Positions 2,115-49,602 of a DNA stretch of 64,000 nt are shown in pieces. The notes below the pieces were generated by a model. It had not been told where the DNA came from, did no database searches, and saw nothing but the letters and a program-made list of their open reading frames with translations. The stretch covers positions 182,150 through 246,149 of IMG/VR virus record IMGVR_UViG_3300042261_002390; one strand, written 5' to 3'. The stretch's first letter is position 1. Each line of letters begins with the position of its first letter. A program made the position numbers and the translations under genes.

Positions 2115-2633
2115 TTATTTCGTGTTAATTTTTAATCCCATTTCTTTCATTCTGAGCAATGCTTCTGCATTGCCTTTAGCGTCATCTATAGGGTGATGAG
2201 TATGTTTTGTCGTTCTAAGATGTTTCCATTTAGCGAAAGTATCTTTAACCATTCCACAATATAGGTCACCAATCCGTCTTGAAGTCCAATTAAAAGGATT
2301 TGAGCCATAATAAACATGGAAATAGTAGTTTATCCATGAAGCATCAAATCCATTATTGTCTGCGAATAAAACAGGTTTTCCTTTAGAGTTTTCAATAACC
2401 CATTTAGCAAAATTAGCCATAACGATTGAAGGTTCATCGAATGTAAGATGCTCTTCCCTACTAATACCACTAATGGCAAGCGTTTCAGGGTCATATTTAT
2501 CTGAAATTGGCTTTATTTTACCGTAGAACATAGTATCGAGTTTTGGCGTTAGTTTTACAACGCCAAAACATACCATACTATTCATCCCAATAATTTGACC
2601 ATCAGTTTCAATATCGATTACAAAGTTACTCAT
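2115..2633 (-). CDS. DEDDh 3'-5' exonuclease (DnaQ-like)
   Basis: Motifs VIDIETDG, DNNGFDASW, HHPIDDA. Confidence 0.85.
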   Translation of the reverse strand: MSNFVIDIETDGQIIGMNSMVCFGVVKLTPKLDTMFYGKIKPISDKYDPETLAISGISREEHLTFDEPSIVMANFAKWVIENSKGKPVLFADNNGFDASWINYYFHVYYGSNPFNWTSRRIGDLYCGMVKDTFAKWKHLRTTKHTHHPIDDAKGNAEALLRMKEMGLKINTK

Positions 2634-2634
2634 C

Positions 2635-2883
2635 CTATACTTTCAGTGCTAATTTCTGTAGATTAGCTTTGAATGTTTTTCTTGCAAAGATAAATAAAAA
2701 TATTTCATACAAGGTATGCATTAAAGCAAAAATATAGTGAAATAATGAAACACATATTGCAACCAATAACCCAAATGTGAATTTATTGAGCCAACCTTCA
2801 AATTTTTCGAACATTGTGCCAATTCGTTTCCAGTGATTTACCTCTTTTTTCCAGAGGATATTTAATAATGTTACTTTTTTCAT
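2635..2883 (-). CDS. small membrane protein
   Basis: 82 aa with a hydrophobic segment; packed between neighbours. Confidence 0.6.
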   Translation of the reverse strand: MKKVTLLNILWKKEVNHWKRIGTMFEKFEGWLNKFTFGLLVAICVSLFHYIFALMHTLYEIFLFIFARKTFKANLQKLALKV

Positions 2884-3540: not shown

Positions 3541-4935
3541 TTATTTTTCGTCGTCAGTATCTGCCCATTCAAGACCCGGACAGTAATCGGTGTAACTAGC
3601 ACTAAAATATTCACCAAAAATACCTGTACTACCATAAATTCCACGACCGATTGCACACAATCCACGCCAAACAGCCAATGCCAATGGTACTATAATTTTC
3701 ATAGCAAACCAAATTGCAGGTTTAATCAAGATGTATAGGAAGCTGTATGCAATACCCAATGCAACATATTTTATTGGGTAATATAACCAAATTAATGGCT
3801 CAACATACCAAACCTTTTTACCTGTTTTATACTTATTTACAATTTTTTGCCCGAAACCAATAATAAAGAAACCGATTAGATATGCAATACCAACAATTGA
3901 TAATCCCGCTAAAACATAAACATACAATAACCAATTAGTTGCTGACCAGTCAATAACAATTGTTAATAGGTGTGCAATTAAATTCACTATAAAGAATGAG
4001 GCTGTGAGAAAAAATAACGTAATCAATCCACCAACGAACTGTTTAGTTCTTCTGATGATGTTCTTCCAATCTAAATCAAATGTGAATGCATCAACAAAAA
4101 AATCAATTAGTTTATTCAATGCATTATTAATTGGTTTCATTCTAGCATCCCATTTTTCTTTCTTGATTGCTTCTTTACGTTCAATTTCTCGTTGTTTAAG
4201 AAGACGTTTTTGGTAATCTTCTCGTTTTTTCGCATTAATTTGCGTACTCCATGCGTTCCACTTTAATTCAAGTTCTTTTCTTTTTCCCAAGTATTCTTTT
4301 TGATTAGTACCATATTCTAAGCCATACTTTTCAAGCAGAAAATAATTTAGAATATCGGTGTCTTTGTTTTTTAAATAAAACTTGGCTGTTGTAGGCAATT
4401 TTAAATTACCCCTGTAATAGTACTCGTAGACTTCTTCTTCTTCAATACTTAACAACCAGCTATTAATGAATTTTTCCAGTGACCAGATTAAAATTCTTGG
4501 GAAAAGCATGATTAGCGAATATATAACTTCCCCAATCACTTTAAATGGAACAACTAAAACTGAAAAAATCAGCAACCAAAAGTACGGACAGCCATTTTGC
4601 ATAGTTTTAGGTGTCGGAGCATTTGAGCCAAGCACGTATTTCACCAAACGATAGTGCCATGATTTCATGCTTACACGCATCAATTTAGGCTTTTCTGCCT
4701 GAACAATGTACGCATCATCGCCAGTTTGAAGGTAAATTTTACTGTTTAATGATAACGAACCAACAATAGTTTCAACTACTTTAATATAGTAGCCTTCATA
4801 GTCTTTGTAAAGGAAGCCTTTACAATACAAGATGTTAGGTTTGTTGAATTCAACAACCTTATTCATCAATAACTCTAATTTTTCAAGTTTGTCGGTAATG
4901 TTTCCGACAACAGCTTTTTTAGTTATTTTTCCCAT
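3541..4935 (-). CDS. multi-pass membrane protein with central coiled coil
   Basis: 464 aa; several TM stretches and a charged K/E/R-rich helix. Confidence 0.75.
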   Translation of the reverse strand: MGKITKKAVVGNITDKLEKLELLMNKVVEFNKPNILYCKGFLYKDYEGYYIKVVETIVGSLSLNSKIYLQTGDDAYIVQAEKPKLMRVSMKSWHYRLVKYVLGSNAPTPKTMQNGCPYFWLLIFSVLVVPFKVIGEVIYSLIMLFPRILIWSLEKFINSWLLSIEEEEVYEYYYRGNLKLPTTAKFYLKNKDTDILNYFLLEKYGLEYGTNQKEYLGKRKELELKWNAWSTQINAKKREDYQKRLLKQREIERKEAIKKEKWDARMKPINNALNKLIDFFVDAFTFDLDWKNIIRRTKQFVGGLITLFFLTASFFIVNLIAHLLTIVIDWSATNWLLYVYVLAGLSIVGIAYLIGFFIIGFGQKIVNKYKTGKKVWYVEPLIWLYYPIKYVALGIAYSFLYILIKPAIWFAMKIIVPLALAVWRGLCAIGRGIYGSTGIFGEYFSASYTDYCPGLEWADTDDEK

Positions 4936-5440: not shown

Positions 5441-6215
5441 TTAATAATTTTCTTACATTGTCCAGATGTTTATTATCCATCGGCTTACCGCAAGTGTTCA
5501 ATTTAATGAAGGTTTCGTAAATGTCTTTTTTCGACGGATTTCTTAATGTTCCATATACGATTCCGTGTTCTTCAAATTTATGTCTATCTCTGAAAGATAA
5601 TTCAGAAAACTTATAACCTTTGTATTTGAATCGGTCTTCATAGAACTCACAAATTGCGGTAAGTCGTTGTTTACCGTCGATAATTTCAAATGCTTCGGCA
5701 CGTTTATCGGAATATGGTCGCTCAACGAAAACAAATTTACCAATATCAACATTGTTGAAAATGCTATCGATTAACGCAATCTTATCGCTGAGTTCCCAAA
5801 CATGTTCACGCTGATACTCAACGTCAAAATCAACACCATTAAAATGTACCATGTGAATAAGTGAACGTATGCCTGAATTAGATTGATTGATGCGACAAGT
5901 TTCTTCTTTCCTAAATGTTGTTGGTTTTGCCGTATCATATGGAAACAACTCATACCATTCAACAATTTGTATTGGCTGTGACTGCGATTTAACATTAAAG
6001 TTTTCAACCTTATAGAACAATCCATTTTCATAGATTTCACGAATATAGGTTTCATCATGTGCCCCATAGAATACACGGTCACCTATATTGAAAAATCTTG
6101 TTGGATTTTGTGATAATATTCCGTCTGCGATTTTTTTGCGCAAATCACGAATATCATTCTCCAACAAGATTTTCTGATGTTCTTCAGGTGAAATTGTATT
6201 TTTTTTCTTAGCCAT
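5424..6215 (-). CDS. DUF262 (ParB-like/GmrS-type) domain protein
   Basis: YQREHVW, IIDGKQRLTAI, FIKLNTCGKP motifs. Confidence 0.8.
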   Translation of the reverse strand: MAKKKNTISPEEHQKILLENDIRDLRKKIADGILSQNPTRFFNIGDRVFYGAHDETYIREIYENGLFYKVENFNVKSQSQPIQIVEWYELFPYDTAKPTTFRKEETCRINQSNSGIRSLIHMVHFNGVDFDVEYQREHVWELSDKIALIDSIFNNVDIGKFVFVERPYSDKRAEAFEIIDGKQRLTAICEFYEDRFKYKGYKFSELSFRDRHKFEEHGIVYGTLRNPSKKDIYETFIKLNTCGKPMDNKHLDNVRKLLNELDE

Positions 6216-6267: not shown

Positions 6268-6624
6268 TTATTCGTTATTTGCAACAAAAATTTCAGCAAT
6301 TGCTTTTTTTATTTGTTCTTTAGGTAATACACCCACTGCTAATTGTGGTTCAGCACCGATTGGGATGAACAACATTGAGGGAACATTTCTGATTCCGAAT
6401 GTCATAGCTAATTCACTTTCAGCATCGGTATCGATTTTATATACATCGATTTCCGGATGTTCTGCAGCGACTTCTTCCAAAATAGGTGCAAGCACTTTAC
6501 ATGGTTGACACCATTCTGCTTCGAACTTTAATATTGTTGGCTTAGTACCTTTGAATGACCACTCATCGCCATTGGTGTAGTCAAATACTTTTTCTTTAAA
6601 ACTTTCAACAGTTAAATTTTCCAT
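6268..6624 (-). CDS. trxA: thioredoxin
   Basis: WCQPCK active site; IRNVP cis-Pro motif. Confidence 0.9.
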   Translation of the reverse strand: MENLTVESFKEKVFDYTNGDEWSFKGTKPTILKFEAEWCQPCKVLAPILEEVAAEHPEIDVYKIDTDAESELAMTFGIRNVPSMLFIPIGAEPQLAVGVLPKEQIKKAIAEIFVANNE

Positions 6625-6650
6625 TTTCTAATTTTTATTTAAGATTATTA

Positions 6651-7226
6651 TTATTTTAATTCTGGATGTAATTTATTCCAGATTTTTGTACAATAGTTTA
6701 TTTGAAACCTACAATCATCTAAAGGATGGTGTTCAGTACCTATGTTAGGTTCATTAGCTTTAATCTCCGGCGAGAAGAATTCGAATGTTCTGACATCAAG
6801 TTCTTTTCTAAAATCCCAAGGTATTGCTTCATAATTCCATAAAACATATGCATCCTTAAGTATTCCGCAGTCAAATCTAGGACTTCTGCCGTAAACATAT
6901 ATATCCTTACCGCCTATTTCGCCCATGTATGACTTGAATTTTTCCAGAACATTTTTTATGTTATCAGAAGGTTTGCACATTTCTTTACGTGCTTCTTCAT
7001 TTTGTTGAAGCCACCAATAGATTGTACTACCGTTAATTTTCATACCAGAGTTTAAACATGATTGAATATCAATTCTTTCATAGAAAGTTCTACCATATTC
7101 GCCAGTATTTAAATCAAATTCGACAGCACCTATTGATGTAATGACAGAATAGCTATCATTACCCATAGTTTCAAGGTCGAGCATTACGTGACCTAAATTT
7201 TTTTGAGGAAATCTTTTACTTACCAT
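6651..7226 (-). CDS. 3'-5' exoribonuclease (DEDD, Rv2179c-like)
   Basis: MLDLETMG, FDCGIL, HHPLDDC. Confidence 0.85.
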   Translation of the reverse strand: MVSKRFPQKNLGHVMLDLETMGNDSYSVITSIGAVEFDLNTGEYGRTFYERIDIQSCLNSGMKINGSTIYWWLQQNEEARKEMCKPSDNIKNVLEKFKSYMGEIGGKDIYVYGRSPRFDCGILKDAYVLWNYEAIPWDFRKELDVRTFEFFSPEIKANEPNIGTEHHPLDDCRFQINYCTKIWNKLHPELK

Positions 7227-7903: not shown

Positions 7904-8374
7904 ATGAAAACAGGCAAACGAATTCCAATTACTGCAGCTAAACAAATTGCAGATACATATGGATATACACAAGTAATCATTCATGCATATGACGGAGAAC
8001 AATCCGGGGTACAATGTGTTGCAACATACGGCAAAACAGTCGATGATTGTAATAATGCAGCCAATGGTGGTAATCACATCAAGAAATTATTAGGCTGGTC
8101 GCCTCATCTATGCAATACACTTCCACGTAGAAGAAAAAAAGAAGAAGTTGACAATAGCTTAGATAAACCAGAAACATTAATGAAACAAGGGTTTGAAAGT
8201 CTAAGTGCAACTCGTAGCTACTTTAAAAATGCCGTTGTTGAGTATCAAAAAAGAAACTCAAGTGCTAAAGCTGACCCAGAAAATGCTAAGAATGTCCAAG
8301 AAGCAATCAATTTATTAAACAAAGCCTATGATGAAATTTCCGCTATTTGGGAAAATGATATCATGGATTCTTAA
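7904..8374 (+). CDS. hypothetical protein
   Basis: 156-aa ORF, first plus-strand gene. Confidence 0.7.
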   Translation: MKTGKRIPITAAKQIADTYGYTQVIIHAYDGEQSGVQCVATYGKTVDDCNNAANGGNHIKKLLGWSPHLCNTLPRRRKKEEVDNSLDKPETLMKQGFESLSATRSYFKNAVVEYQKRNSSAKADPENAKNVQEAINLLNKAYDEISAIWENDIMDS

Positions 8375-8988: not shown

Positions 8989-9014
8989 TGTAACATTTCT
9001 AAATTGTAAACGTA
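8989..9014 (+). promoter_or_regulatory. ECF-type promoter TGTAAC-N16-CGTA
   Basis: Recurrent intergenic motif. Confidence 0.7.
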
Positions 9015-9037
9015 TTATTCGCCGAAAAATTAACCGA

Positions 9038-9229
9038 ATGAAAAATAAAATTAATATACTTGAACCACCAAAACCGCCTCTAGGTAGGGCGTTACGAGAA
9101 GGTGTTGGGCATTTTTGTAATAATTGTGGCTCGACTGTATCTAAAAACGGCTTTCTTGGATTATTTGGTGAAATGTTATGCTATAATCAAGAATGCCCGA
9201 ACAGTAAATCAAAAAAATATGGATTATAA
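9038..9229 (+). CDS. small Cys-rich (zinc-ribbon-like) protein
   Basis: CNNCG and CYNQEC motifs. Confidence 0.6.
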   Translation: MKNKINILEPPKPPLGRALREGVGHFCNNCGSTVSKNGFLGLFGEMLCYNQECPNSKSKKYGL

Positions 9230-9443
9230 AAAGCTAAGTACTGATGAACTTTGTGACATTATTGTAACTAAGATTGGCGTACCGTTACCAACATATAGTT
9301 ATGACTATAGGAAATATGTTTCTGTAGTACCTCAAAATATTAGTTTTGGTGATGGTGTTAAGGGAATTGAAAATGCTGATTTACACAATACATTTAGAGA
9401 GGCATGTATGCGTATAATATTTTGGGATTTGGATAAAACGTAA
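9219..9443 (+). CDS. hypothetical protein
   Basis: Internal ATG (MDYKKLST) of the 9102-9443 ORF, coupled to the upstream stop. Confidence 0.6.
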   Translation: MDYKKLSTDELCDIIVTKIGVPLPTYSYDYRKYVSVVPQNISFGDGVKGIENADLHNTFREACMRIIFWDLDKT

Positions 9444-9484
9444 ATAGTTAAAATTCTTTACTATTTATATATAAAAAAATTTCT

Positions 9485-10000
9485 ATGAGTAATGAAATAC
9501 GAGAAATGATTGATAGAGTTAAAAATTTTAAACAATTCATAAACGAACAATCAGAACAAAAAAACAATGTGATATATCATTTTGTTGATGAAAAGAAATT
9601 GGTTAATATCTTAATTAAAAATGAATTAAAGCCAAGGTGGAAACATTATATAGAAAGTGAAGATAGAATTGTTGTTGGGACATCTTTTACTTGGGATTTA
9701 AAACATAGCACAATTTCTAATATGGAATATCCAATAAAACTGATATTTAATAGAAATAAATTAGAAACTGATTATAATTCATTTTTAATTAATAGCAATA
9801 GAGTACATCTACAAACAATGGCACAATTGAAGCCTAATTTATATGACCCAACAGCATATAAATATGAAGATGAAACACCAAATGAGTTGTTTGTAGAAGG
9901 AATAATTAAACCATTGAGTACATATATGATAGATATTGAAATATTAAAACCAATTTCAAAAGAAACTGAACAACTCATTCTTAATTTTAAGCGTGGGTAA
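9485..10000 (+). CDS. hypothetical protein with N-terminal MSNEIREMIDRVKNFKQFINE leader; possible ADP-ribosyltransferase-like fold
   Basis: Spacing of YHF...TSFT...NELF resembles the H-S-E ART triad; TATTTATA box at 9462. Confidence 0.6.
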   Translation: MSNEIREMIDRVKNFKQFINEQSEQKNNVIYHFVDEKKLVNILIKNELKPRWKHYIESEDRIVVGTSFTWDLKHSTISNMEYPIKLIFNRNKLETDYNSFLINSNRVHLQTMAQLKPNLYDPTAYKYEDETPNELFVEGIIKPLSTYMIDIEILKPISKETEQLILNFKRG

Positions 10001-10015
10001 ACTTTTTAAAGTTTT

Positions 10016-10041
10016 TGTAACAAAACGTTAATTAGAACGTA
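10016..10041 (+). promoter_or_regulatory. ECF-type promoter TGTAAC-N16-CGTA
   Basis: Recurrent intergenic motif. Confidence 0.7.
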
Positions 10042-10091
10042 TAATACAATATTCTTATTCACTTAATATTTAAAGACATGAAGAAATTATT

Positions 10092-10259
10092 ATGTATAAA
10101 GAAAATGTAAAATATAAGCTAATCGGATACCAACCAGCAGGAATTGACTATAATGTGCCAAGAACAGAAATTGCTGAATGGAAAAATGGTTATTGGTATC
10201 CATATGGATGTGGGAAAAGAATAGTCAATTTCGTAATTGAAGAAGTAGTAGAACTTTAA
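10092..10259 (+). CDS. small hypothetical protein (55 aa)
   Basis: Manual translation MYKENVKYKLIGYQPAG...VVEL*; the stop lies just before the first attC-like site. Confidence 0.55.
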   Translation: MYKENVKYKLIGYQPAGIDYNVPRTEIAEWKNGYWYPYGCGKRIVNFVIEEVVEL

Positions 10260-10264
10260 ATGTT

Positions 10265-10399
10265 TTATAACATGATGTAGCTAACCGAAGTTGGCGATTA
10301 CGAAGCACAAACTTTCAAACTAAAAAAATGTTTAATCGAAGCACAACAGTTCATATCAGCACTATACCGCCAATTTTGGTTAGCTGCATCACGTTATGT
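10265..10399 (+). mobile_element. attC-like palindromic site 1
   Basis: TTATAAC...GTTATGT ends; arms 10267-10286 and 10378-10397 are complementary at 18/20 positions. Confidence 0.7.
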
Positions 10400-10420
10400 G
10401 CCGTTTTTAAATAAATTATT

Positions 10421-11047
10421 ATGGCTGGAATTGATAAAACTTACACAGACTCTTATAAAGATTATAAAGAGTTTAAAACTTGGGCTGATAACCAAAAATT
10501 AACGTTTTTTGACGGATTAACTGTATGTATTGGTGATTGGGTTTGGCAATATGAAAAGGACGATTTTACAAATGGTGAAATTCCTATTATGAATACTCCA
10601 ACTTGGTTGGATATTTACTTAATTCAAAATTGTAAAACTTGGTTTGTTTTAGATAGAATGAAGTCTGTTTATGGTGAAGAATCATATAAAGAATTTCAAA
10701 ATATTGATTTAACAGCAAAACCACCATCCGACTTTAAGCAGAATAGAAAAATTACAATAAAGCCGAATAAAAATTGCAAGTTTCCATTTAAGAAAAGAAT
10801 GTTTAGCAAGCCAATTGGAGGTAAAACTAAATGGTGGCTGCAATGTGAAAATGATTTTTGGTATAATAATGAAACTAAAAGATGGGTGAGTTATGAAACA
10901 CAATATCCACATAACACTAATACTGCTCATATTACTTCTACTAAAGCATTAGTAAGACATCTACGAAATCAATATTTACCTAAAGGGGTTGTATTTACAA
11001 TTTCGGGTAGATATGTTGGAGAAGAATACATTGCGGTAGTGTCTTAA
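10421..11047 (+). CDS. hypothetical cassette-borne protein
   Basis: 208 aa; bounded by GTTATGTGCC (10393) and its exact reverse complement GGCACATAAC (11050). Confidence 0.75.
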   Translation: MAGIDKTYTDSYKDYKEFKTWADNQKLTFFDGLTVCIGDWVWQYEKDDFTNGEIPIMNTPTWLDIYLIQNCKTWFVLDRMKSVYGEESYKEFQNIDLTAKPPSDFKQNRKITIKPNKNCKFPFKKRMFSKPIGGKTKWWLQCENDFWYNNETKRWVSYETQYPHNTNTAHITSTKALVRHLRNQYLPKGVVFTISGRYVGEEYIAVVS

Positions 11048-11052
11048 ATGGC

Positions 11053-11185
11053 ACATAACGTGTTGCAGCTATGCGCTGAATGGGGATTGTACCCACGAAA
11101 CTTAAAACGAATAACAAAACTATGAATACTAACAATTTATCCAACGAGAGCGAAAACCCCATTTTGCGTATAGGTGCGGTTAGCT
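11053..11185 (+). mobile_element. attC-like palindromic site 2
   Basis: ACATAAC...GTTAGCT ends; internal imperfect inverted repeat CTATGCGCTGAATGGGG / CCCCATTTTGCGTATAG. Confidence 0.7.
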
Positions 11186-11694
11186 GCTGCCGTTTTATTT
11201 TTCTCGATATTGACGGGGTGATAGCTACACCAAAAACGGTAGAGCATGGAATGTGGGCTTTAACACCTGAAAAACAAGATTTACTTGGAATGATAATAGA
11301 AAAAACAGGTGCAAAGATTGTGCTTAGTAGTAGCTGGCGAAAACATACAATTGAAGATACTATTGAACACATGAAAGAACATGGGTTTAGATTCTGTGAT
11401 GAAATTGTAGGCATAACAATTAGAGCTTATCAATATTTACAAAAAGGCGTTCATTTATCAATTCCGAGAGGTGTAGAGATTAAGCAATGGATTGATACGA
11501 ATATTCATTCAAATAATGGTAAAGATTGGAACAGAAAGGAATTAGGCAAAGATTGGAATTATGTGATTTTGGATGATGATTCCGATATGCTTTTAGAACA
11601 CAAAGATAATTTTATATGTTGCGATTCAATGGAAGGTTTAACTCTCGAACAAGCAAACAAAGCTATCGAGGTGCTTTCTTACGGTTGCAGCTAA
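11122..11694 (+). CDS. HAD-family phosphatase (HAD_SAK-like); start lies inside the attC-like site
   Basis: FLDIDGV, LSSSWR and ILDDD motifs; the N-terminus MNTNNLSNESENPILRIGAVSCC is encoded by the palindrome. Confidence 0.8.
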   Translation: MNTNNLSNESENPILRIGAVSCCRFIFLDIDGVIATPKTVEHGMWALTPEKQDLLGMIIEKTGAKIVLSSSWRKHTIEDTIEHMKEHGFRFCDEIVGITIRAYQYLQKGVHLSIPRGVEIKQWIDTNIHSNNGKDWNRKELGKDWNYVILDDDSDMLLEHKDNFICCDSMEGLTLEQANKAIEVLSYGCS

Positions 11695-11976
11695 CGGTTG
11701 GCGGTATGGCATAGTTATTTTTTCTATCACAAAACTAAATTAAAAGATATGGCTTATGATATTTATGGACAAAACTTAGCGAGCGGACACTGTGAGGTGC
11801 ATCCGTGGGTGGGAGAAAGTTACCCTTGCTCTTTGTGTTACGCAGAAAGCAAGCCTAAGCACGACCCAAGACAAAAAGAGTATGAACGTGCGGAGGCAGA
11901 ATACTACGCTGAAATGGAGCGAGCGCACTACGAAGAACTGGCAAGAAAAAATAATTTGCTATACCGCATGTTATGC
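11689..11976 (+). mobile_element. attC-like site 3 with an unusually long, gene-containing loop
   Basis: AGCTAAC...GTTATGC ends; arms GCGGTATGGCATAGTTATTTTTT (11701) and AAAAAATAATTTGCTATACCGC (11946-11967). Confidence 0.6.
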
Positions 11977-12066
11977 TATGTGGCACTTGCAGTAAGCAAA
12001 TTAAATGAGCGAGTTCAGAAATACAAGGAAAAAATGTTAAGCAGAGTGGTGCAAAAGCGCCATTGA
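11749..12066 (+). CDS. hypothetical protein spanning attC-like site 3
   Basis: MAYDIYGQ start with CEVH/CSLC Cys-His motifs; reads through the right arm. Confidence 0.6.
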   Translation: MAYDIYGQNLASGHCEVHPWVGESYPCSLCYAESKPKHDPRQKEYERAEAEYYAEMERAHYEELARKNNLLYRMLCYVALAVSKLNERVQKYKEKMLSRVVQKRH

Positions 12067-12095
12067 GCATAACTCCCAAATATACGCAATATTAC
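12066..12095 (+). mobile_element. orphan attC-like left half-site
   Basis: AGCATAAC is the exact reverse complement of GTTATGCT at 11970; followed by an L-box-like ATATACGCAAT with no partner found nearby. Confidence 0.45.
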
Positions 12096-12110
12096 CAAAG
12101 ATTAATTATC

Positions 12111-12335
12111 ATGAAATCAATTACATATACCATTGAAATTAAATGGATAATTATTGGATATGATAATTATGGATTTGGTAGTGATAAGATTCTTTATAAT
12201 TTGAAAACTAATAGAAGATTAAAACAATCATATAATTCAGGAAGTATTGGTTATTGGTTTGGGAAACGATTTATTCCATTATCGAAACTAAGAAATTTAT
12301 TAAAAAAACCAACAATAGAATTTTGTCCTTTTTAA
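12111..12335 (+). CDS. hypothetical protein
   Basis: Internal ATG MKSITYTIE of the 12063 ORF. Confidence 0.6.
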   Translation: MKSITYTIEIKWIIIGYDNYGFGSDKILYNLKTNRRLKQSYNSGSIGYWFGKRFIPLSKLRNLLKKPTIEFCPF

Positions 12336-12336
12336 T

Positions 12337-12362
12337 TGTAACCTTTTTGATTGTGATTCGTA
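12337..12362 (+). promoter_or_regulatory. ECF-type promoter TGTAAC-N16-CGTA
   Basis: Recurrent intergenic motif. Confidence 0.7.
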
Positions 12363-12386
12363 TAAGTAGGAAACCATTAAAAATAA

Positions 12387-12728
12387 ATGATGAAAAAGAT
12401 TTTATTATCGATACTAATTGTGGTGGCATTTACTTCATGTGAAGAAATGAAAAAGACCAAAGAATTTTATGCCGACGAGCAAAAAAAATTAAGTCCTGCA
12501 AGTACTGAATATACTAAAATCAGGCTCGTAGAATTAAAAGACTTCGAAGGTTATAATCAAAATGTTGGTGGCTTTGATTTTGTGAGAGATAGTTGTGAAT
12601 ATACCTATCTTTGGACAGGTGCTGGAAATGGTGGCGGTACAATTTTCCATAAAGGCAATTGTAAGTATTGTCAAGAACGCAATAAAAAAATGATTGAAAA
12701 CCTTTTAAAGAAATATTACCATGAATAA
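12387..12728 (+). CDS. putative lipoprotein
   Basis: Signal peptide ending AFTSC (lipobox-like). Confidence 0.7.
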   Translation: MMKKILLSILIVVAFTSCEEMKKTKEFYADEQKKLSPASTEYTKIRLVELKDFEGYNQNVGGFDFVRDSCEYTYLWTGAGNGGGTIFHKGNCKYCQERNKKMIENLLKKYYHE

Positions 12729-12987
12729 TTTATCATATCCGAAAGATTTCGGAAAAACCGTTGAGAGTGTTGAAATAATCAGTAATGAAGTTAACGATGA
12801 TAGAGTTATCATTAGCATTGAAAATGATGGCAATTTTGGTCACTTCTTAGCGTCAGAAGGTAAACCATTTGTATTTGCCAATGAAGAAGCTGCTGAAGAA
12901 TTTGCTAAAGAACACGCACTTGAAAACTACAATATTGAACCATTTGTTGATTATGATTTTTCCGGCATAGAACTAATCGAACTATAA
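12721..12987 (+). CDS. hypothetical acidic protein
   Basis: 88-aa ORF, overlaps the upstream stop. Confidence 0.65.
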   Translation: MNNLSYPKDFGKTVESVEIISNEVNDDRVIISIENDGNFGHFLASEGKPFVFANEEAAEEFAKEHALENYNIEPFVDYDFSGIELIEL

Positions 12988-13001
12988 TCTCATGAAAGAA
13001 T

Positions 13002-13310
13002 ATGAAGTTAAGTGCAAATGCAAAATTTTGGTCGAGTATTGGTGCAATAATGGTTATACTCATCATATTGCTATTTCTACTGAAAAAAGGAATTGATAGC
13101 CAATTAGACAAGGAAGCTAAGGAAAGTTATCAAGCAATCGAAGCAGCATCTGCTGAATCATATGAACGTGGATTGTGGGATGGTTTTAATCTCACCGTTA
13201 AGTATCTAAACGATAAAAAGTATCTGAAAGACAACGATACTATAAAAATCGAGATTACTGAATTAATTGATGTATTACACTCAAAAAATAATCAAAATGC
13301 CAAGAATTAA
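13002..13310 (+). CDS. membrane-anchored hypothetical protein
   Basis: N-terminal TM helix. Confidence 0.65.
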   Translation: MKLSANAKFWSSIGAIMVILIILLFLLKKGIDSQLDKEAKESYQAIEAASAESYERGLWDGFNLTVKYLNDKKYLKDNDTIKIEITELIDVLHSKNNQNAKN

Positions 13311-13485
13311 AAGTGTTGTTAAGAATGAAGAGGTTTATGTACGTCTAAGTGATATAATGTTATCACTACGAGAAGATTTAGATAATGTTAAGTCTGATGA
13401 GGTGAAAGAATATATCCGGGATGACATTAAAGTGTGGAAAAAATATGAAAAAGATATTTTAGAACAAGCAGGTATAAAATTTTAA
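13297..13485 (+). CDS. hypothetical protein
   Basis: Internal ATG MPRIKSVV. Confidence 0.6.
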   Translation: MPRIKSVVKNEEVYVRLSDIMLSLREDLDNVKSDEVKEYIRDDIKVWKKYEKDILEQAGIKF

Positions 13486-13494
13486 TTAAAAACT

Positions 13495-14382
13495 ATGACA
13501 GATATTGAATTAATCGAAAAAATATTGGCATCTAAAAAGCCATCAGATATCTTTCCGGATGATTGGAAAAAAGACTATCTTCGCTACAGTAAAATGATTT
13601 ATCCTGATTTTTGTAAGCATCCTAAAGCGAGTGATGCTATGGCAAAAATTAATCATTATAAAGATTTGATTGAGAACGGTACAATATATACTGATGAAGC
13701 CGGAGAATTTCGAGTCTTTGAGAAGAAAATTGAATATCAAATAACTGATACTAATCGTACTATTCTAAGATGGTCATACGAAAATTATCGTAAACTCAAA
13801 TCTAAAACTGATGAAGCATCGTTGAAATTTCATCGATATTTGCCGGAAGATATGATTATGAATAACGATAAGTTAACTATTGTATTAAAAGACCGGGCAG
13901 TTCCATTATCAAATAATCAGCTTGAACAAATTCATGTAAATTGGATATTTAGCCGAATGTTTGAGTTTAGTATGTGGATGCAACAGATTGGTATGGTTCA
14001 TATGGGTTTAAACCCTACGACTGTATTTGTTGTTCCTGAAACACATGGAATTATTGTCGTTTCTTTTTATCATATGTGCCCGATTGGGAAGAAAGCTGAA
14101 ACTATTTCAGCTAAGTACAAAACATGGTATCCAACAACGTTGTTTAGTAAAAAGATTGCAACATCTGATATTGATTTAGAATTGTGTAAGAAAATTGCCA
14201 TATATTTATTGGGCGATAGGTCAGCAGCAGGTACTAAATTAAAAATGGATAAAAAAAATATAAATCAGGATGTTTTGACATTCTTGTTAACTAAACATGA
14301 AAATAGTATTGAGATATATAAAAAATATCGTGATTTGTTGGCAAAACACTTTGAAAGAAAATTTTATCCATTTTCTTTGTAG
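13495..14382 (+). CDS. J-domain-like N-terminus plus protein-kinase-like domain
   Basis: YSKMIYPD (HPD-like) helix; MVHMGLNPTTVFVVPETHG resembles a degenerate kinase catalytic loop. Confidence 0.6.
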   Translation: MTDIELIEKILASKKPSDIFPDDWKKDYLRYSKMIYPDFCKHPKASDAMAKINHYKDLIENGTIYTDEAGEFRVFEKKIEYQITDTNRTILRWSYENYRKLKSKTDEASLKFHRYLPEDMIMNNDKLTIVLKDRAVPLSNNQLEQIHVNWIFSRMFEFSMWMQQIGMVHMGLNPTTVFVVPETHGIIVVSFYHMCPIGKKAETISAKYKTWYPTTLFSKKIATSDIDLELCKKIAIYLLGDRSAAGTKLKMDKKNINQDVLTFLLTKHENSIEIYKKYRDLLAKHFERKFYPFSL

Positions 14383-43230: not shown

Positions 43231-44253
43231 ATGCAGCCGATATTATTAACACGTGATGATTTCCGGAATGGCGTTTTTGAGCGTGATTCTCATAAATGCG
43301 TTATCTGCAAGAAACCTGCAGTTGACGCACATCACATTATTGAGCGCAGACTATTTTCAAATGGTGGATACTACATCGAGAATGGCGCATCGCTTTGCGC
43401 TGAACACCATGTTGAAGCAGAGCAAACCACATTATCTTGTGATGTGATTCGTGAAAAATGTGGCATTGAAACTATCGTATTGCCTGACCATTTTTATGAT
43501 GATAATGAATACGATAAGTGGGGAAATATCATATTGCCGAATGGTAACAGGGTTAAAGGCGAATTATTCTATGATGAAAGCGTTCAGAAGATACTGAAAC
43601 AAGGTGGCGTGTTGGATTTATTTGTTAAGTATGTAAAGTACCAAAGAACTTTCCATTTACCGTGGAGTAATCTGTTGAAAGACGATAGAATTCTTGAAAA
43701 CGATAATCATTTTCACGGTAAACGTGTCGTCGTGACACTTAAAATGGATGGTGAAAATACTACTATGTATAACGACCATATTCATGCACGTTCATTAGAA
43801 TCAGCTAGTCATGAAACACGTAATTGGGCTAAGGGTTTATGGTCTAGGATTTCATATTTACTTGATGATAACATGCGCATTTGTGGTGAAAACCTATATG
43901 CAGTTCATTCTGTTAAGTATGAGGAATTACCAACGTATTTTATGATGTTTTCAATCTGGATTGATAACAAATGCTTGTCTTGGGATGAAACCCAAGAATA
44001 TGCCAAAATTCTTGGATTAGAGACAGTCCCGGTCTTCTATGATGGAATTTACGATAAAGACAAAATAATCGCCGAATTCGAGAAATACAGGCTTAAAAAC
44101 GAAGGATATGTTATTCGTTTAGCTGATGAATTTTATTATCAGGATTTCCGCAAATCTATTGCAAAATACGTGCGTCCAGAGTTTAGACAAATCGTCAATA
44201 ACTCACATGGACACTGGATTTCGAAAAAAGTTGAACCAAATAAATTAAAATAA
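43231..44253 (+). CDS. HNH domain fused to an ATP-dependent RNA ligase domain
   Basis: CVIC...DAHHII...NGASLCAEHH; TLKMDGENTT, ICGEN, FSIW, EGYVIR, AKYVR. Confidence 0.85.
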   Translation: MQPILLTRDDFRNGVFERDSHKCVICKKPAVDAHHIIERRLFSNGGYYIENGASLCAEHHVEAEQTTLSCDVIREKCGIETIVLPDHFYDDNEYDKWGNIILPNGNRVKGELFYDESVQKILKQGGVLDLFVKYVKYQRTFHLPWSNLLKDDRILENDNHFHGKRVVVTLKMDGENTTMYNDHIHARSLESASHETRNWAKGLWSRISYLLDDNMRICGENLYAVHSVKYEELPTYFMMFSIWIDNKCLSWDETQEYAKILGLETVPVFYDGIYDKDKIIAEFEKYRLKNEGYVIRLADEFYYQDFRKSIAKYVRPEFRQIVNNSHGHWISKKVEPNKLK

Positions 44254-48261: not shown

Positions 48262-49602
48262 ATGGAAAATTATTGTATTAAAACAAGAAAGATTACGATA
48301 ATTCCTTCAGGGGATAATCGGAATGATGTTTATTCGTATATTCGAAAAATGGCATCAGATTTAGCAAGAATTGGTAATGGCGTGATTAGGCTTCACTTTA
48401 ACAATCAATACGATATTGATGAAATATCGAAGTCACGTAATATTACTAAGTCGGATGCAAAGAAATTTGTTGAAGAAAAGCTTGGTACGTCAATTCGTAA
48501 TTCTGGTTATCAATCATTGACTGAGTTGATTGACATATCTTCAAATATTCGCACATCGTTTAATTCATTGATTTTTAAAACAACACAAAATAATTTCTTT
48601 GATGTTTTAACGGGGAAAATGAGTATTCCTTCATTCAGGAAGACCAACATCAATATTCCGTTTCAATTTAAGGGAGATGCTCCGTTTAGTCTGGATGAAA
48701 AAGAATACTATTATTTCAATTTACCCTCAACCAAACACACTAAAGAAACAATCGGTGAACTGAAATTATCGTTGTTCTTTGGAAAAGATAGAAGCAATAA
48801 TCGTATTATTGTCGAACGCATTCTTAGTGGCGAATATGAAATATGCGATAGCTCAATTCAAGTAAAGGATAAAGATTTGTTTTTGTTGCTAACATATAAA
48901 CAGCCAATAAGCGAAAAGCTATTAAAACCTGAAAAAGTAATGGGTATTGATATCGGCATTAATCGTCCGGTAAGTTTTTACATCAGTGATGAAAAACATC
49001 AGCCAAGACAGTTTAATCTTAACGAGCATATACAGCATGAGAGGCTTAAATTGTTGAAACAAAGAAAATCGCTTCAACAATCATTAAAATTTTCTGTTGG
49101 TGGTCATGGTAGAAATCGAAAATTAGTGGCACTGAATGTATTAAAAGAAAAAGAATTACGTTGGGCAAAAAATAAGAATCATCAAATCACTAAAGCAATT
49201 ATTGATATTGCGCTACAGTATGGTGTTGGGGTGATTAAAATGGAAGATTTGACTGGTATTACTCAAGATACTAAAAATTATTTCTTGAAGTCTTGGGCAT
49301 ATTATCAACTGCAAAGCTTCTTGGAATATAAAGCCAAATCCTATGGTATTAAAATCTTATGGGTTGACCCAAAAAATACGTCTAGAACATGTCCTGTTTG
49401 TGGTAATGTCGATAAAGAAAACAGACATAGCACAGTCTTTAAATGTGTAAATGAATCATGTCCAGACCACGATGTTGAAAAAGATGCCGATATTGTCGCA
49501 GCTTTGAATATATCAAAATCAATTGGTTCTGATGTGAAACCTAAATCGAAAAAGGGAATTATCAGTGCTAAGACAAAACAAAAAGATATTGTTGAAGCAT
49601 AA
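48262..49602 (+). CDS. cas12f: compact type V effector, Cas12f-like (TnpB-derived RuvC nuclease)
   Basis: RuvC D230 (GIDIG), E328 (MEDL), D410 (DAD..AALNI); Zn finger CPVC/CVNESC; GGHGRNRKL and ERILSGEY segments typical of Cas12f1; flanked by two arrays. Confidence 0.88.
   Translation: MENYCIKTRKITIIPSGDNRNDVYSYIRKMASDLARIGNGVIRLHFNNQYDIDEISKSRNITKSDAKKFVEEKLGTSIRNSGYQSLTELIDISSNIRTSFNSLIFKTTQNNFFDVLTGKMSIPSFRKTNINIPFQFKGDAPFSLDEKEYYYFNLPSTKHTKETIGELKLSLFFGKDRSNNRIIVERILSGEYEICDSSIQVKDKDLFLLLTYKQPISEKLLKPEKVMGIDIGINRPVSFYISDEKHQPRQFNLNEHIQHERLKLLKQRKSLQQSLKFSVGGHGRNRKLVALNVLKEKELRWAKNKNHQITKAIIDIALQYGVGVIKMEDLTGITQDTKNYFLKSWAYYQLQSFLEYKAKSYGIKILWVDPKNTSRTCPVCGNVDKENRHSTVFKCVNESCPDHDVEKDADIVAALNISKSIGSDVKPKSKKGIISAKTKQKDIVEA

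Follow-up and report, generated by a model that had tools for sequence, protein, structure and literature searches.

The stretch analysed here (hereafter the window) is 64,000 nucleotides of the genome of a jumbo phage (record IMGVR_UViG_3300042261_002390, positions 182,150 to 246,149). Between positions 10268 and 12090 of the window, three genes are separated by three strand-specific hairpin sites, A, B and C, and the region ends in a TAAC followed by a junction motif (Table 1). The first gene encodes a 208-aa protein for which profile searches returned no informative family; relatives of this protein at 65–72% amino-acid identity, on four contigs (L123–L126; L numbers designate the related loci retrieved in this work), share no synteny beyond that gene and lack the hairpins. 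The second encodes a HAD_SAK_2 phosphatase (PF18143, E 4.7e-21, domain from residue 26). The third encodes a 105-aa protein with a CxxH...CxxC motif followed by a helical tail, and is GC-rich (47–51%) compared to about 30% for the phage.

Table 1. Coordinates, in the window, of the features of the array and of the complementary segments; all features of the array are on the + strand.
Feature	Coordinates	Description
Site A	10268–10396	129-nt hairpin; TAAC 10268–10271; stem arms 10276–10296 and 10368–10388; GTTA 10393–10396; loop with the family motifs ATTACGAAGCAC and CTTTCAAACTA
Complementary arms of A	10267–10296 / 10368–10397	30 nt, 87%
Body of unit 1	10397–11059	5' end TGTGCCGTTTTT; 3' end AAATGGCACATAAC, complementary to the 5' end
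208-aa gene	10421–11047	unknown function
Flanks of segment 1	10381–10406 / 11046–11071	26 nt, 92% complementary
Site B	11056–11182	127-nt hairpin; TAAC at 11056; loop with the ATG (11122) of the next gene and a 26-codon ORF (11048–11125)
HAD_SAK_2 phosphatase gene	11122–11694	cargo of unit 2
Body of unit 2	11179–11695	from GTTAGCTGCTGCCGT to ACGGTTGCAGCTAAC
Flanks of segment 2	11179–11193 / 11681–11695	15 nt, 87% complementary (13/15)
Site C	11692–11973	282-nt long-loop hairpin; TAAC 11692–11695; arms about 11701–11724 and 11943–11967; GTTA 11970–11973; loop encoding the first 73 residues of gene 3
Gene 3 (105 aa)	11749–12066	cargo of unit 3
Flanks of segment 3	11970–11988 / 12055–12073	19 nt, 79% complementary
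End of the array	12066–12090	last cassette end AGCATAAC (half-site); terminal TAAC plus junction motif TCCCAAATATACGCAAT, 12070–12090
Stop codon before A	10257–10259	9 nt before the TAAC
Stop codon before B	11045–11047	9 nt before the TAAC
Stop codon at C	11692–11694	inside the TAAC
Stop codon at the end of the array	12064–12066	4 nt before the TAAC at 12070
IS605-type TnpB gene	48262–49602	36 kb away

The original prediction, made from the sequence alone, had described a chain of palindromes with TAAC and GTT ends, in which the start of each intervening segment is complementary to its own end and stop codons fall at or just before the TAAC ends. This observation is confirmed: all the palindromes and complementarities are located where they had been placed, the flanks of segments 1 and 3 containing the reported 10/10 and 8/8 pairings and those of segment 2 corresponding to the reported 13/15. 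These features are more than chance. The motif GCAGCTAAC, with up to one mismatch, has 16 matches in the window against 4.9 expected, and all three exact matches plus one 1-mismatch match lie within 10277–11695. Sites A and B match a covariance model built here from relatives (model R1) at 82.7 and 79.1 bits (E about 1e-16) on the + strand, against 15.8 bits on the − strand. Folding predictions gave a z score of −3.2 on the + strand and −2.0 on the − strand for site A. Site B folds only on the + strand (−21.2 kcal/mol, z −2.35; − strand z +0.44), through two G.T wobbles. Site C is a long-loop member: its arms fit the family, but its 240-nt loop holds the first 73 codons of gene 3 and the model matches only its ends. 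The region also contains many weak inverted repeats (43 pairs in 3.5 kb), including a 16-nt repeat around ORF 10092–10259 that was judged to be within chance.

To determine whether these sites belong to a wider family, related sequences were collected. A megablast search of positions 9000–13500 against deposited phage genomes found nothing. Rfam searches, at gathering thresholds or at permissive E-values, returned no family in the window or in two site-rich loci, and no tRNA was found. A first 17-nt pattern derived from the left arms gave mostly single matches, consistent with our estimate of chance hits, and was replaced by a structure-aware pattern. With the latter, the family was found in at least 120 viral and at least 120 Bacteroidota/FCB genome loci, both sets being drawn with a pattern derived from phage copies. 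Model R1 gave 188 hits in 80 bacterial loci and 241 hits in 80 viral loci that had been fetched through the recombinase protein alone (see below). In an alignment of 16 sites, 16 of the 20 stem pairs show compensatory changes, and G.U is kept in 14/16 and 15/16 sequences at two positions. Strand specificity was tested with a finder blind to strand: non-Watson-Crick stem positions are G.T 542 times against A.C 49 times, and the 5' spacer is the longer one in 232 of 261 sites. One alternative, that the palindromes are ordinary terminators, REP-like repeats or chance matches in an AT-rich phage, could draw on the T-runs that follow the outer arms and on the abundance of weak inverted repeats. It is however contradicted by the covariance-model E-values, by the hundreds of homologous copies with compensatory changes, and by the cassette-end complementarity and near-identical units in unrelated flanks described below, and we give it almost no weight.

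We next examined the organisation of the units. Each consists of a hairpin of about 125 nt (short forms of about 57 nt and long-loop forms also exist), which reads TAAC, a 3–6 nt spacer, a 20-bp stem with two conserved G.T wobbles, a loop of about 70 nt with conserved motifs, the return arm, a 2–3 nt spacer and GTTA; this is followed by 10–14 nt, the cargo gene, and 10–14 nt complementary to that start and ending in TAAC. Across the family, the 12 nt after GTTA pair with the 12 nt before the next TAAC at 7.1–7.9 of 12 positions, whereas the figure is 4.0 across the same hairpin and 3.6 at random (Mann-Whitney p 2e-71). T at −7 (92–95%) and G at +7 (80%) are conserved in both the viral and the bacterial sets. 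The outer stem, which carries a third conserved T.G wobble, is complete only when the two ends of a unit are brought together, as in a circle. Segment 3 had been presented as a separate intervening segment; it is instead the 3' part of a gene that starts inside hairpin C.

The absence, in related genomes, of variation with breakpoints at the GTT, together with palindromes behaving as ordinary terminators or repeats, had been specified in advance as the outcome that would refute a cassette array. The comparison came out in favour of the array: related contigs carry the same units in unrelated contexts, with breakpoints on the TAAC and GTTA boxes. The gene-3 unit is 93–95% identical in four unrelated contexts and is bounded by TAAC at both ends; in L130, L131 and L132 the whole unit is conserved, starting exactly at TAAC. 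The phosphatase unit occurs in five contexts, in all of which the start codon lies in the hairpin loop; homology in L135 and L137 starts exactly at 11179, and in L135, L136, L137 and L138 it ends within 14 nt of the TAAC at 11695. A 1057-nt cassette is 100% identical in two MAGs that represent different species, being internal to the array in one and first next to the recombinase in the other. In a scan of homology segments of at least 150 nt, 88 5' ends fall on TAAC, 21 of 49 long blocks end immediately after TAAC, and none ends just after a downstream hairpin. A minority of blocks start at GTTA with a different hairpin upstream (L402/L422 and L008/L126), which a single crossover point per site does not predict. 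No closely related genome with an empty site at this exact locus was found, including among L123–L126, and gain or loss in this particular phage is therefore not shown. These data indicate that the unit runs from the end of one TAAC to the end of the next, with the hairpin at the 5' end of its gene, so that the site travels with the downstream gene and not with the upstream one.

We then sought the recombinase. As the original prediction had stated for integrases, none lies in the window: Pfam searches of 84 ORFs, a catalytic-motif expression, tblastn, and a profile of 42 viral recombinases run against all six-frame ORFs found none, and weak tblastn matches in ORF 13495–14382 were rejected after inspection of the protein. 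The contig was absent from the best 80 of at least 140 viral loci encoding the recombinase, which leaves its presence elsewhere in the genome undecided, as the other 182 kb of the contig were not read. In other arrays a tyrosine recombinase is associated: Phage_integrase plus Phage_int_SAM_4 is the commonest family beside the bacterial arrays. Its best NCBIfam match is NF040815 (XerA/integron integrase); TIGR02249 matches only outside model positions 180–237, and about 40 residues of the IntI-specific domain are missing against VchIntIA (PDB 2a3v; residues 184–242). The closest structures are those of XerA (4a8e, 5hxy). At least 140 viral contigs encode this recombinase themselves, and in the 80 examined the gene directly follows a co-oriented array. 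Array-linked recombinases are encoded, for example, in the phage loci L456 and L348 and in the bacterium Flavobacterium cheonanense JCM 17069 (L323). A host integrase, which had been proposed initially, is therefore not required.

These platforms share an attI-like junction between array and recombinase gene, conserved in 19 of 19 platforms inspected and also in bacterial platforms (TAAC followed by TATTATATATAA or by TCCCTTATATGTACG). In the window, the motif that follows the terminal TAAC, TCCCAAATATACGCAAT, resembles the bacterial junction in L256 and a junction repeated in one viral contig; this 12-mer is unique in the window and recurs after TAAC in another viral contig. However, no recombinase gene follows it, the phage consensus TATTATATATAA is not matched, and that consensus is not over-represented in the window, so that this comparison does not settle whether the end of the array is a junction of this type.

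The orientation of the genes relative to the sites differs between hosts and phages. Genes beside the sites lie on the strand opposite to the fold in bacteria (169∶9) and on the same strand in phages (225∶5). This bears on the principal alternative, in which the hairpins are RNA elements of phage early or accessory transcripts (processing or stabilising stems, weak terminators or translation-start display) and genes are shuffled simply by homologous recombination between these conserved repeats, as proposed for the PeSL motifs of T4-type phages (PMC2839356, PMC4122927). In its favour, the fold in phages is on the sense strand with G.U wobbles, a T-run follows the outer arm, the phosphatase and gene-3 start codons lie in hairpin loops, and PeSL provides a precedent for repeat-mediated modular shuffling in phage hyperplastic regions. 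However, in bacteria the same fold, with the same three wobbles and flanks, is conserved on the antisense strand, and a role at the mRNA level therefore cannot explain its conservation there. In addition, cassette ends co-vary with each other and not across the hairpin, breakpoints pile up on TAAC rather than spreading over the conserved stem, arrays abut a tyrosine recombinase through a conserved junction, no classical terminator is predicted at the sites and no Rfam family matches. A possible Bacteroidota −7 promoter in the loop was checked by eye and does not fit. We consider this alternative unlikely, although an additional or alternative RNA role in phages is not excluded.

A second alternative is mobilisation by a single-strand HUH (Y1) transposase, as in IS200/IS605 or REP/RAYT systems, with insertion 3' of TAAC and a short guide pairing (GTTA) positioning the cleavage sites next to a subterminal hairpin. 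The TAAC boundaries, the single 5' hairpin with the 3' end pairing next to its foot, the strand-specific fold and the presence of a TnpB gene in the window would fit. However, no Y1 or HUH family appeared among the Pfam families listed for array neighbours (the 25 commonest), the recurrent neighbour is a tyrosine recombinase in a fixed array-recombinase architecture, no hairpins of this family flank the TnpB gene, and ordered, co-oriented arrays with a conserved terminal junction are typical of integron-like platforms and not of IS200/IS605 copies. This alternative appears very unlikely.

Taken together, these results are best explained by a short, recombinase-less array of three gene cassettes belonging to an integron-like system shared by Bacteroidota/FCB bacteria and their phages, a reading to which we assign a probability of about 0.78. 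The anatomy of the units is established by the sequence comparisons, whereas the mechanism is inferred: recombination was not observed directly, and circles, cleavage position and strand use are all deduced from sequence. In this view, the strand with the wobbles folds as single-stranded DNA, a XerA-like tyrosine recombinase cuts between TAA and C on the 5' arm, and units are excised as circles and re-inserted after a TAAC, preferentially at the attI-like junction (TAAC followed by TATTATATATAA) beside the recombinase gene. The cassettes of the window would have to be moved in trans, by an enzyme encoded elsewhere in the 246-kb genome, by a co-infecting phage, or by the host. The original interpretation, a cassette array captured by or exchanged with an integron-like tyrosine recombinase, is supported in its core, with the corrections that the sites are not canonical attC sites, that each hairpin travels with the downstream gene, and that the likely enzyme is of a phage type.

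The cargo fits an accessory-gene bank: in phages it includes six DNA methyltransferases, Tad6 and Lar, and in bacteria AbiJ, caspase and nucleotidyltransferases. A broader hypothesis, which we regard as slightly more likely than not, is that phages of Bacteroidota carry their own platforms (a XerA-like recombinase without the IntI domain, an attI-like junction and upstream arrays whose folded sites lie on the coding strand), mirroring host-phylum arrays that use the same site family on the antisense strand. The phage arrays would be exchangeable banks of counter-defence and other accessory genes, including the phosphatase described here, and the bacterial arrays banks of defence genes; the phage sites, being transcribed in sense, may also serve as RNA structures that set off each cistron, and the window would be an orphan array serviced in trans. 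Integrons are the textbook device by which bacteria collect and shuffle single genes, and are considered rare in Bacteroidota and marginal in phages. If the family works as inferred, a major bacterial phylum and its phages have a parallel cassette system that standard detectors largely miss, phages themselves encode the recombinase, and the hypervariable accessory regions of many large phages would have a defined, testable mechanism of gene gain and loss. It would also offer a natural comparison of how a Xer-type enzyme without the IntI domain reads a folded strand, and of why gene orientation relative to that strand is opposite in phage and host. For the window, it explains why three unrelated small genes, one of them GC-rich and 94% identical to copies in other phages, sit side by side.

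The closest described system is the integron. Shared characters are (i) arrays of small co-oriented genes separated by imperfect palindromes whose only invariant letters are AAC and GTT, (ii) pairing of the start of each cassette with the start of its own site, the signature of a circular intermediate, (iii) a strand-specific fold with unequal 5' and 3' arms, (iv) a platform with a Xer-related tyrosine recombinase and a primary junction next to it, (v) in bacteria, a folding strand that is the bottom strand relative to the genes, and (vi) accessory and defence cargo. TAAC and GTTA bound A, B and C and are invariant in the family, but the RRRY and RYYY positions of the integron cores are not conserved as purines or pyrimidines. 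In contrast to integrons, where the site lies at the 3' end of its gene and the crossover is at G/TT of the right-hand core, homology blocks in the window and the viral set start at the TAAC before the upstream hairpin and end at the TAAC before the downstream one; read from the folding strand the phasing is the same as in integrons, but the genes are on that strand. In the window the coding strand folds, and the asymmetry comes from conserved G.T wobbles and a longer 5' spacer, with a conserved loop, instead of canonical extrahelical G/T and a variable loop. The array-linked recombinases of relatives lack the IntI-specific additional domain near patch III, of about 35–40 residues, and are closest to archaeal XerA; in bacteria the recombinase gene is co-oriented with the cassettes, and in phages the array lies upstream of it. 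IntegronFinder surveys reported almost no integrons in Bacteroidetes (PMC9024848).

Clusters of attC sites lacking an integrase (CALINs) have been reported in phages by Qi et al. 2023 (PMC9892861), between accessory genes, notably DNA methyltransferases, in virulent phages with no integrase nearby. The locus described here fits the CALIN definition of at least two co-oriented sites within a few kb and no integrase nearby, with three sites within 1.7 kb, all on the + strand, and no tyrosine recombinase in the 64 kb. That study found only 17 CALINs in 10,705 phage genomes and treated them as classical attC sites usable by IntI1. One of its cases, P12002L_attC1 of Polaribacter phage P12002L (NC_028924 30015–30046), looks by eye like a short-form member of the family; model R1 did not report it but found three further copies on the sense strand of that genome. 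Polaribacter phages P12002L and P12002S carry sites but no annotated recombinase. P12002L_attC1, the only member tested in the literature, was detected by HattCI and not by Infernal, and was not recombined by IntI1 in E. coli; the sites of the window were not run through the IntegronFinder attC model or HattCI. The family, its phage-type recombinase, its attI-like junction and its opposite gene orientation in phages and bacteria are not described in that paper, and the family is apparently undescribed.

PeSL (promoter-early stem-loop) cassettes of T4-type phages (PMC2839356, PMC4122927) likewise involve conserved stem-loops that flank small accessory genes in hyperplastic regions of large phages and mark the boundaries of insertions, deletions and replacements. 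However, PeSLs are composite promoter-terminator motifs of about 70 bp, thought to act through homologous recombination without a dedicated recombinase, whereas no sigma-70 promoter-like or terminator-like site coincides with A, B or C, apart from a trivial 5-bp stem in the right arm of B, the strand-specific fold is also conserved in bacteria on the antisense strand, breaks are precise at TAAC and a recombinase is linked to the arrays. IS200/IS605 and REP/RAYT single-strand transposition shares a hairpin on one strand, insertion 3' of a fixed tetranucleotide and a short pairing that positions the cleavage site, but no HUH transposase appeared among the 25 commonest Pfam families listed for array neighbours, each unit has a single 5' hairpin rather than hairpins at both ends, and the sites form ordered arrays with a tyrosine recombinase and a terminal junction. 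Finally, in Xer recombination of folded single-stranded phage DNA (CTX-type IMEX) and archaeal XerA/dif, a Xer-family enzyme without the IntI domain acts, or could act, on a folded single strand that mimics a duplex core site; those systems integrate whole replicons, or resolve dimers, at a single dif site and do not build arrays of gene cassettes.

The 3' terminal 64 kb of the 246-kb viral contig IMGVR_UViG_3300042261_002390 have a G+C content of about 30%, and small genes run on the + strand from about 7.9 kb onward. The original prediction described a chain of palindromes bounded by TAAC and GTT between 10.2 and 12.1 kb, and all of them are present. The start of each intervening segment is complementary to its own end (26 nt at 92%, 15 nt at 87% and 19 nt at 79%), and stop codons lie at or just before each TAAC. 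The observation on which the prediction rested is therefore confirmed. Searches of the sequence revealed no tRNA and no match to an Rfam family. The third gene of the array (gene 3) is 94–97% identical at the protein level to copies in three other viral contigs, one of them of 218 kb; together with its G+C content, this suggests recent acquisition. The coordinates of these and of the other features are collected in the following table.

Positions of the array features and of other features noted in the window and in related viral contigs
Feature	Sequence	Position	Strand	Remarks
Site A, arms	window	10267-10296 and 10368-10397	+	folding strand
Site B	window	11046-11195	+	folding strand
Site C	window	11681-11976		
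Half-site	window	12066-12073		
208-aa gene	window	10421-11047		unknown function
HAD_SAK_2 phosphatase gene	window	11122-11694		PF18143, E 4.7e-21
Gene 3	window	11749-12066		105 aa
G+C content of gene 3	window	11750-11960		47-51% G+C
Unit 1	window	10272-11059		A plus the 208-aa gene
Unit 2	window	11060-11695		B plus HAD
Unit 3	window	11696-12073		C plus gene 3
26-codon ORF in hairpin B	window	11048-11125		
TAAC...GTTA pair without hairpin	window	10018-10030		TAACAAAACGTTA
ORF downstream of this pair	window	10092-10259		
TnpB-like protein	window	48262-49602	+	Cas12f1-like TNB domain, E 1e-18; OrfB_IS605, E 3e-5
RNA repair and nucleotide-metabolism genes	window	1-47500		several ORFs
RNA ligase family ORF	window	43231-44253		one of three
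Very short cassette	L137 (viral contig)	3898-3950		
Very short cassette	L138 (viral contig)	2566-2677		
Direct copies flanking the homologue of the 208-aa gene	L126 (121-kb viral contig)	5486-5620 and 6676-6810		about 135 bp each
IS30-like transposase fragment and end of a HAD cassette	L126	9100-9450		
End of a relative of the 208-aa gene	L123 (93-kb viral contig)	6595-6625		compared with window 11040-11060
tRNA-like sequence	L123	about 8110-8190		

To address whether the palindromes belong to a wider family, we examined relatives of the HAD gene and of gene 3 in other viral contigs. These are flanked by hairpins that differ in sequence but share one architecture: TAAC, a spacer of 3–6 nt, a stem of about 20 bp, a loop of about 70 nt with conserved motifs, the return arm, a spacer of 2–3 nt and GTTA. 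An alignment of 16 copies gave 20 consensus pairs, of which 16 have compensatory changes and two are nearly invariant G.U pairs (14/16 and 15/16). A covariance model built from this alignment scored A at 82.7 bits and B at 79.1 bits on the + strand, whereas A scored only 15.8 bits on the − strand; B folds only on the + strand, and C has the family arms but a loop of 240 nt. The model matched only the two ends of a further TAAC...GTTA pair, TAACAAAACGTTA, which has no hairpin between its boxes; this may be a vestigial or empty site upstream of a small ORF whose 3' end has the cassette-type AAAT-G...TAAC flank. A structure-aware pattern identified at least 120 loci in viral contigs and at least 120 in bacterial genomes, the latter almost all Bacteroidota or other FCB-group bacteria and including complete chromosomes. 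In 80 of the bacterial loci the model found 188 copies, in co-oriented arrays of up to nine or more per 8 kb.

We then asked whether the sites carry the signature of gene cassettes. Across 218 consecutive site pairs, the 12 nt after GTTA were compared with the 12 nt before the next TAAC. Within the same cassette, 7.1 of 12 positions pair in the viral set and 7.9 in the bacterial set, compared to 4.0 across the same hairpin and 3.6 in random pairs (Mann-Whitney p 2e-71). The outer stem of each site is therefore complete only if the two ends of one unit are joined, a property also shown by integron cassettes. The flanks are conserved as well, and identically in the viral and bacterial sets: T at −7 (92–95%) faces G at +7 (80%), which gives a third wobble, and an A-run at −8 to −11 faces a T-run at +8 onward. 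Relatives of the 208-aa gene that lack hairpins, such as that of the viral contig L123, still end in TCTTAAAATGGCA, the sequence that forms the left outer arm in the window, which may bear on how a resident gene becomes a cassette. In the viral contigs L137 and L138, very short "cassettes" have complementary ends that are almost adjacent (for example GTTGTAAAA...TTTTACAAC); they have no room for a gene and look like empty or decayed units.

The original prediction had staked the cassette reading on breakpoints at the GTT boxes in related genomes, and we examined where homology between contigs starts and ends. The gene-3 unit is 93–95% identical in the window and in three other viral contigs whose flanks are unrelated; its homology begins exactly at TAAC and, in three of the four contexts, ends immediately after TAAC. 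The HAD unit occurs in five contexts, and its right boundary always lies immediately after GCAGCTAAC; its upstream hairpin is co-inherited but more diverged, and its start codon lies in the hairpin loop in every case. In the window, hairpin B also contains a 26-codon ORF that starts at the ATG directly after the upstream stop (TAAATG) and ends in an ATGA overlap with the HAD start codon, and the first 24 or so residues of the HAD protein, which precede the Pfam domain, are encoded by the loop and right arm of the hairpin and vary between contexts. In an all-against-all comparison, 88 5' ends of homology segments of at least 150 nt fall on TAAC, 21 of 49 long blocks end immediately after TAAC, and none ends just after a downstream hairpin. 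A 1057-nt cassette is 100% identical in two MAGs that represent different species, being internal to the array in one and in first position beside the recombinase in the other. A minority of blocks start immediately before GTTA, behind a different hairpin; both sides of the hairpin can therefore be breakpoints. The unit begins after a TAAC and comprises the hairpin, GTTA, the gene and a terminal TAAC, after which it ends. Read from the folding strand, this is exactly an integron cassette as seen from its bottom strand. In the viral contig L126, the homologue of the 208-aa gene sits between two direct copies of the 5' region of another gene and looks as if it was inserted with a duplication, with a fragment of an IS30-like transposase and the last 64 nt of a HAD cassette nearby. 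A tRNA-like sequence, seen by eye only, lies downstream of the hypervariable region in the related contig L123.

Beside the bacterial arrays, the most common protein family is a tyrosine recombinase, and a search for the catalytic motif found candidates in 12 bacterial loci and in four viral loci. Of ten candidates scanned against NCBIfam, NF040815 (XerA/integron integrase) is the best match in nine and TIGR02249 narrowly in one, a 221-aa partial ORF (locus L325); TIGR02249 matches only outside model positions 180–237. Compared to VchIntIA (2a3v), about 40 residues of the IntI-specific domain are absent, and the closest solved structures are archaeal XerA. At least 140 viral contigs encode relatives. 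In 80 of them, all 241 model hits lie on the same strand as the recombinase gene, and almost all lie upstream of it, running up to it. In 19 of 19 viral platforms inspected, the last cassette ends in TAAC followed by TATTATATATAA or a close variant, a few tens of nt (up to about 100) before the recombinase start, and bacterial platforms have a similar junction next to the 3' end of the recombinase gene. Bacterial and viral recombinases are separated by one long branch (support 92/100), although sampling was limited and biased. In one viral contig (IMGVR_UViG_3300037067_012524, loci L360 and L422), TAAC followed by ATAAATATATACGCAAT replaces a hairpin at four cassette junctions, and may be a promoter or a duplicated attI-like junction inside an array.

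We wondered whether the orientation of the genes relative to the sites is the same in bacteria and phages. Genes adjacent to the sites lie on the opposite strand in bacterial loci (169 against 9) and on the same strand in viral contigs (225 against 5). In a strand-blind test on loci fetched only through the protein, non-Watson-Crick stem positions are G.T 542 times and A.C 49 times, and the 5' spacer is the longer one in 232 of 261 sites. The same strand therefore folds in both settings. Because that strand is not the mRNA strand in bacteria, the conserved fold is best explained at the DNA level; in phages, however, the sites are also transcribed in sense, so that a second role at the RNA level is possible.

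Of 139 phage cassette ORFs (mean about 125 aa), roughly 85% have no Pfam domain. The others include six DNA methyltransferases, the Thoeris inhibitor Tad6, Lar, ADP-ribosyltransferases and an Rv2179c-like exoribonuclease, whereas bacterial cassettes include AbiJ, caspase-like proteins and nucleotidyltransferases. The window is rich in RNA repair and nucleotide-metabolism genes: three ORFs match the RNA ligase family, and a second HAD_SAK_2, PNKP-ligase-like domains, two Rv2179c-like exoribonucleases, GmrSD_N, DHFR, adenylosuccinate synthetase, thioredoxin, and GIY-YIG and HNH homing endonucleases are also present. The TnpB-like protein, that is, an IS200/IS605-type element or its RNA-guided nuclease inside the jumbo phage, has no hairpins of this family next to it.

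In the window, the final TAAC of the array is followed by TCCCAAATATACGCAAT, which resembles the junction of a bacterial locus (L256) and contains a 12-mer that is unique in the window and recurs four times after TAAC in another viral contig. No recombinase follows, and none was found anywhere in the 64 kb by four methods, as the original prediction had stated; the other 182 kb of the genome were not examined for the enzyme. The array is therefore CALIN-like. The proposal that these sites delimit a cassette array is supported in its core, with corrections that concern the position of the site relative to its gene, the folding strand, the extrahelical bases, the type of recombinase and the third segment, which is not a separate cassette but the 3' part of a gene that starts inside hairpin C, and we estimate at about 0.78 the probability that this is an integron-like cassette array. 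While the anatomy of the units and the comparisons between contigs come directly from the sequences, the mechanism (a folded single strand, a cut between TAA and C, circular intermediates and insertion at the junction) is inferred from them and has not been shown.

Classical integrons share the logic of this system. However, several of their defining features were tested and were not found: (i) the IntI domain, (ii) the location of the site at the 3' end of its gene, (iii) folding of the bottom strand in this phage and (iv) canonical extrahelical bases. IntegronFinder surveys list only In0 elements and one complete integron in Bacteroidetes (PMC9024848). In full-text searches of a literature collection that was not exhaustive, so that prior description is not excluded, we found no account of this family, of its recombinase platform in phages or of the contrast in orientation. 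Qi et al. 2023 (PMC9892861) reported 17 CALINs in 10,705 phage genomes, including one in Polaribacter phage P12002L. Its site P12002L_attC1, which was found by HattCI only and was not recombined by IntI1, looks by eye like a short-form member of this family, and our model finds further sense-strand copies in that genome. Finally, the PeSL motifs of T4-type phages are a functional analogue without a recombinase.
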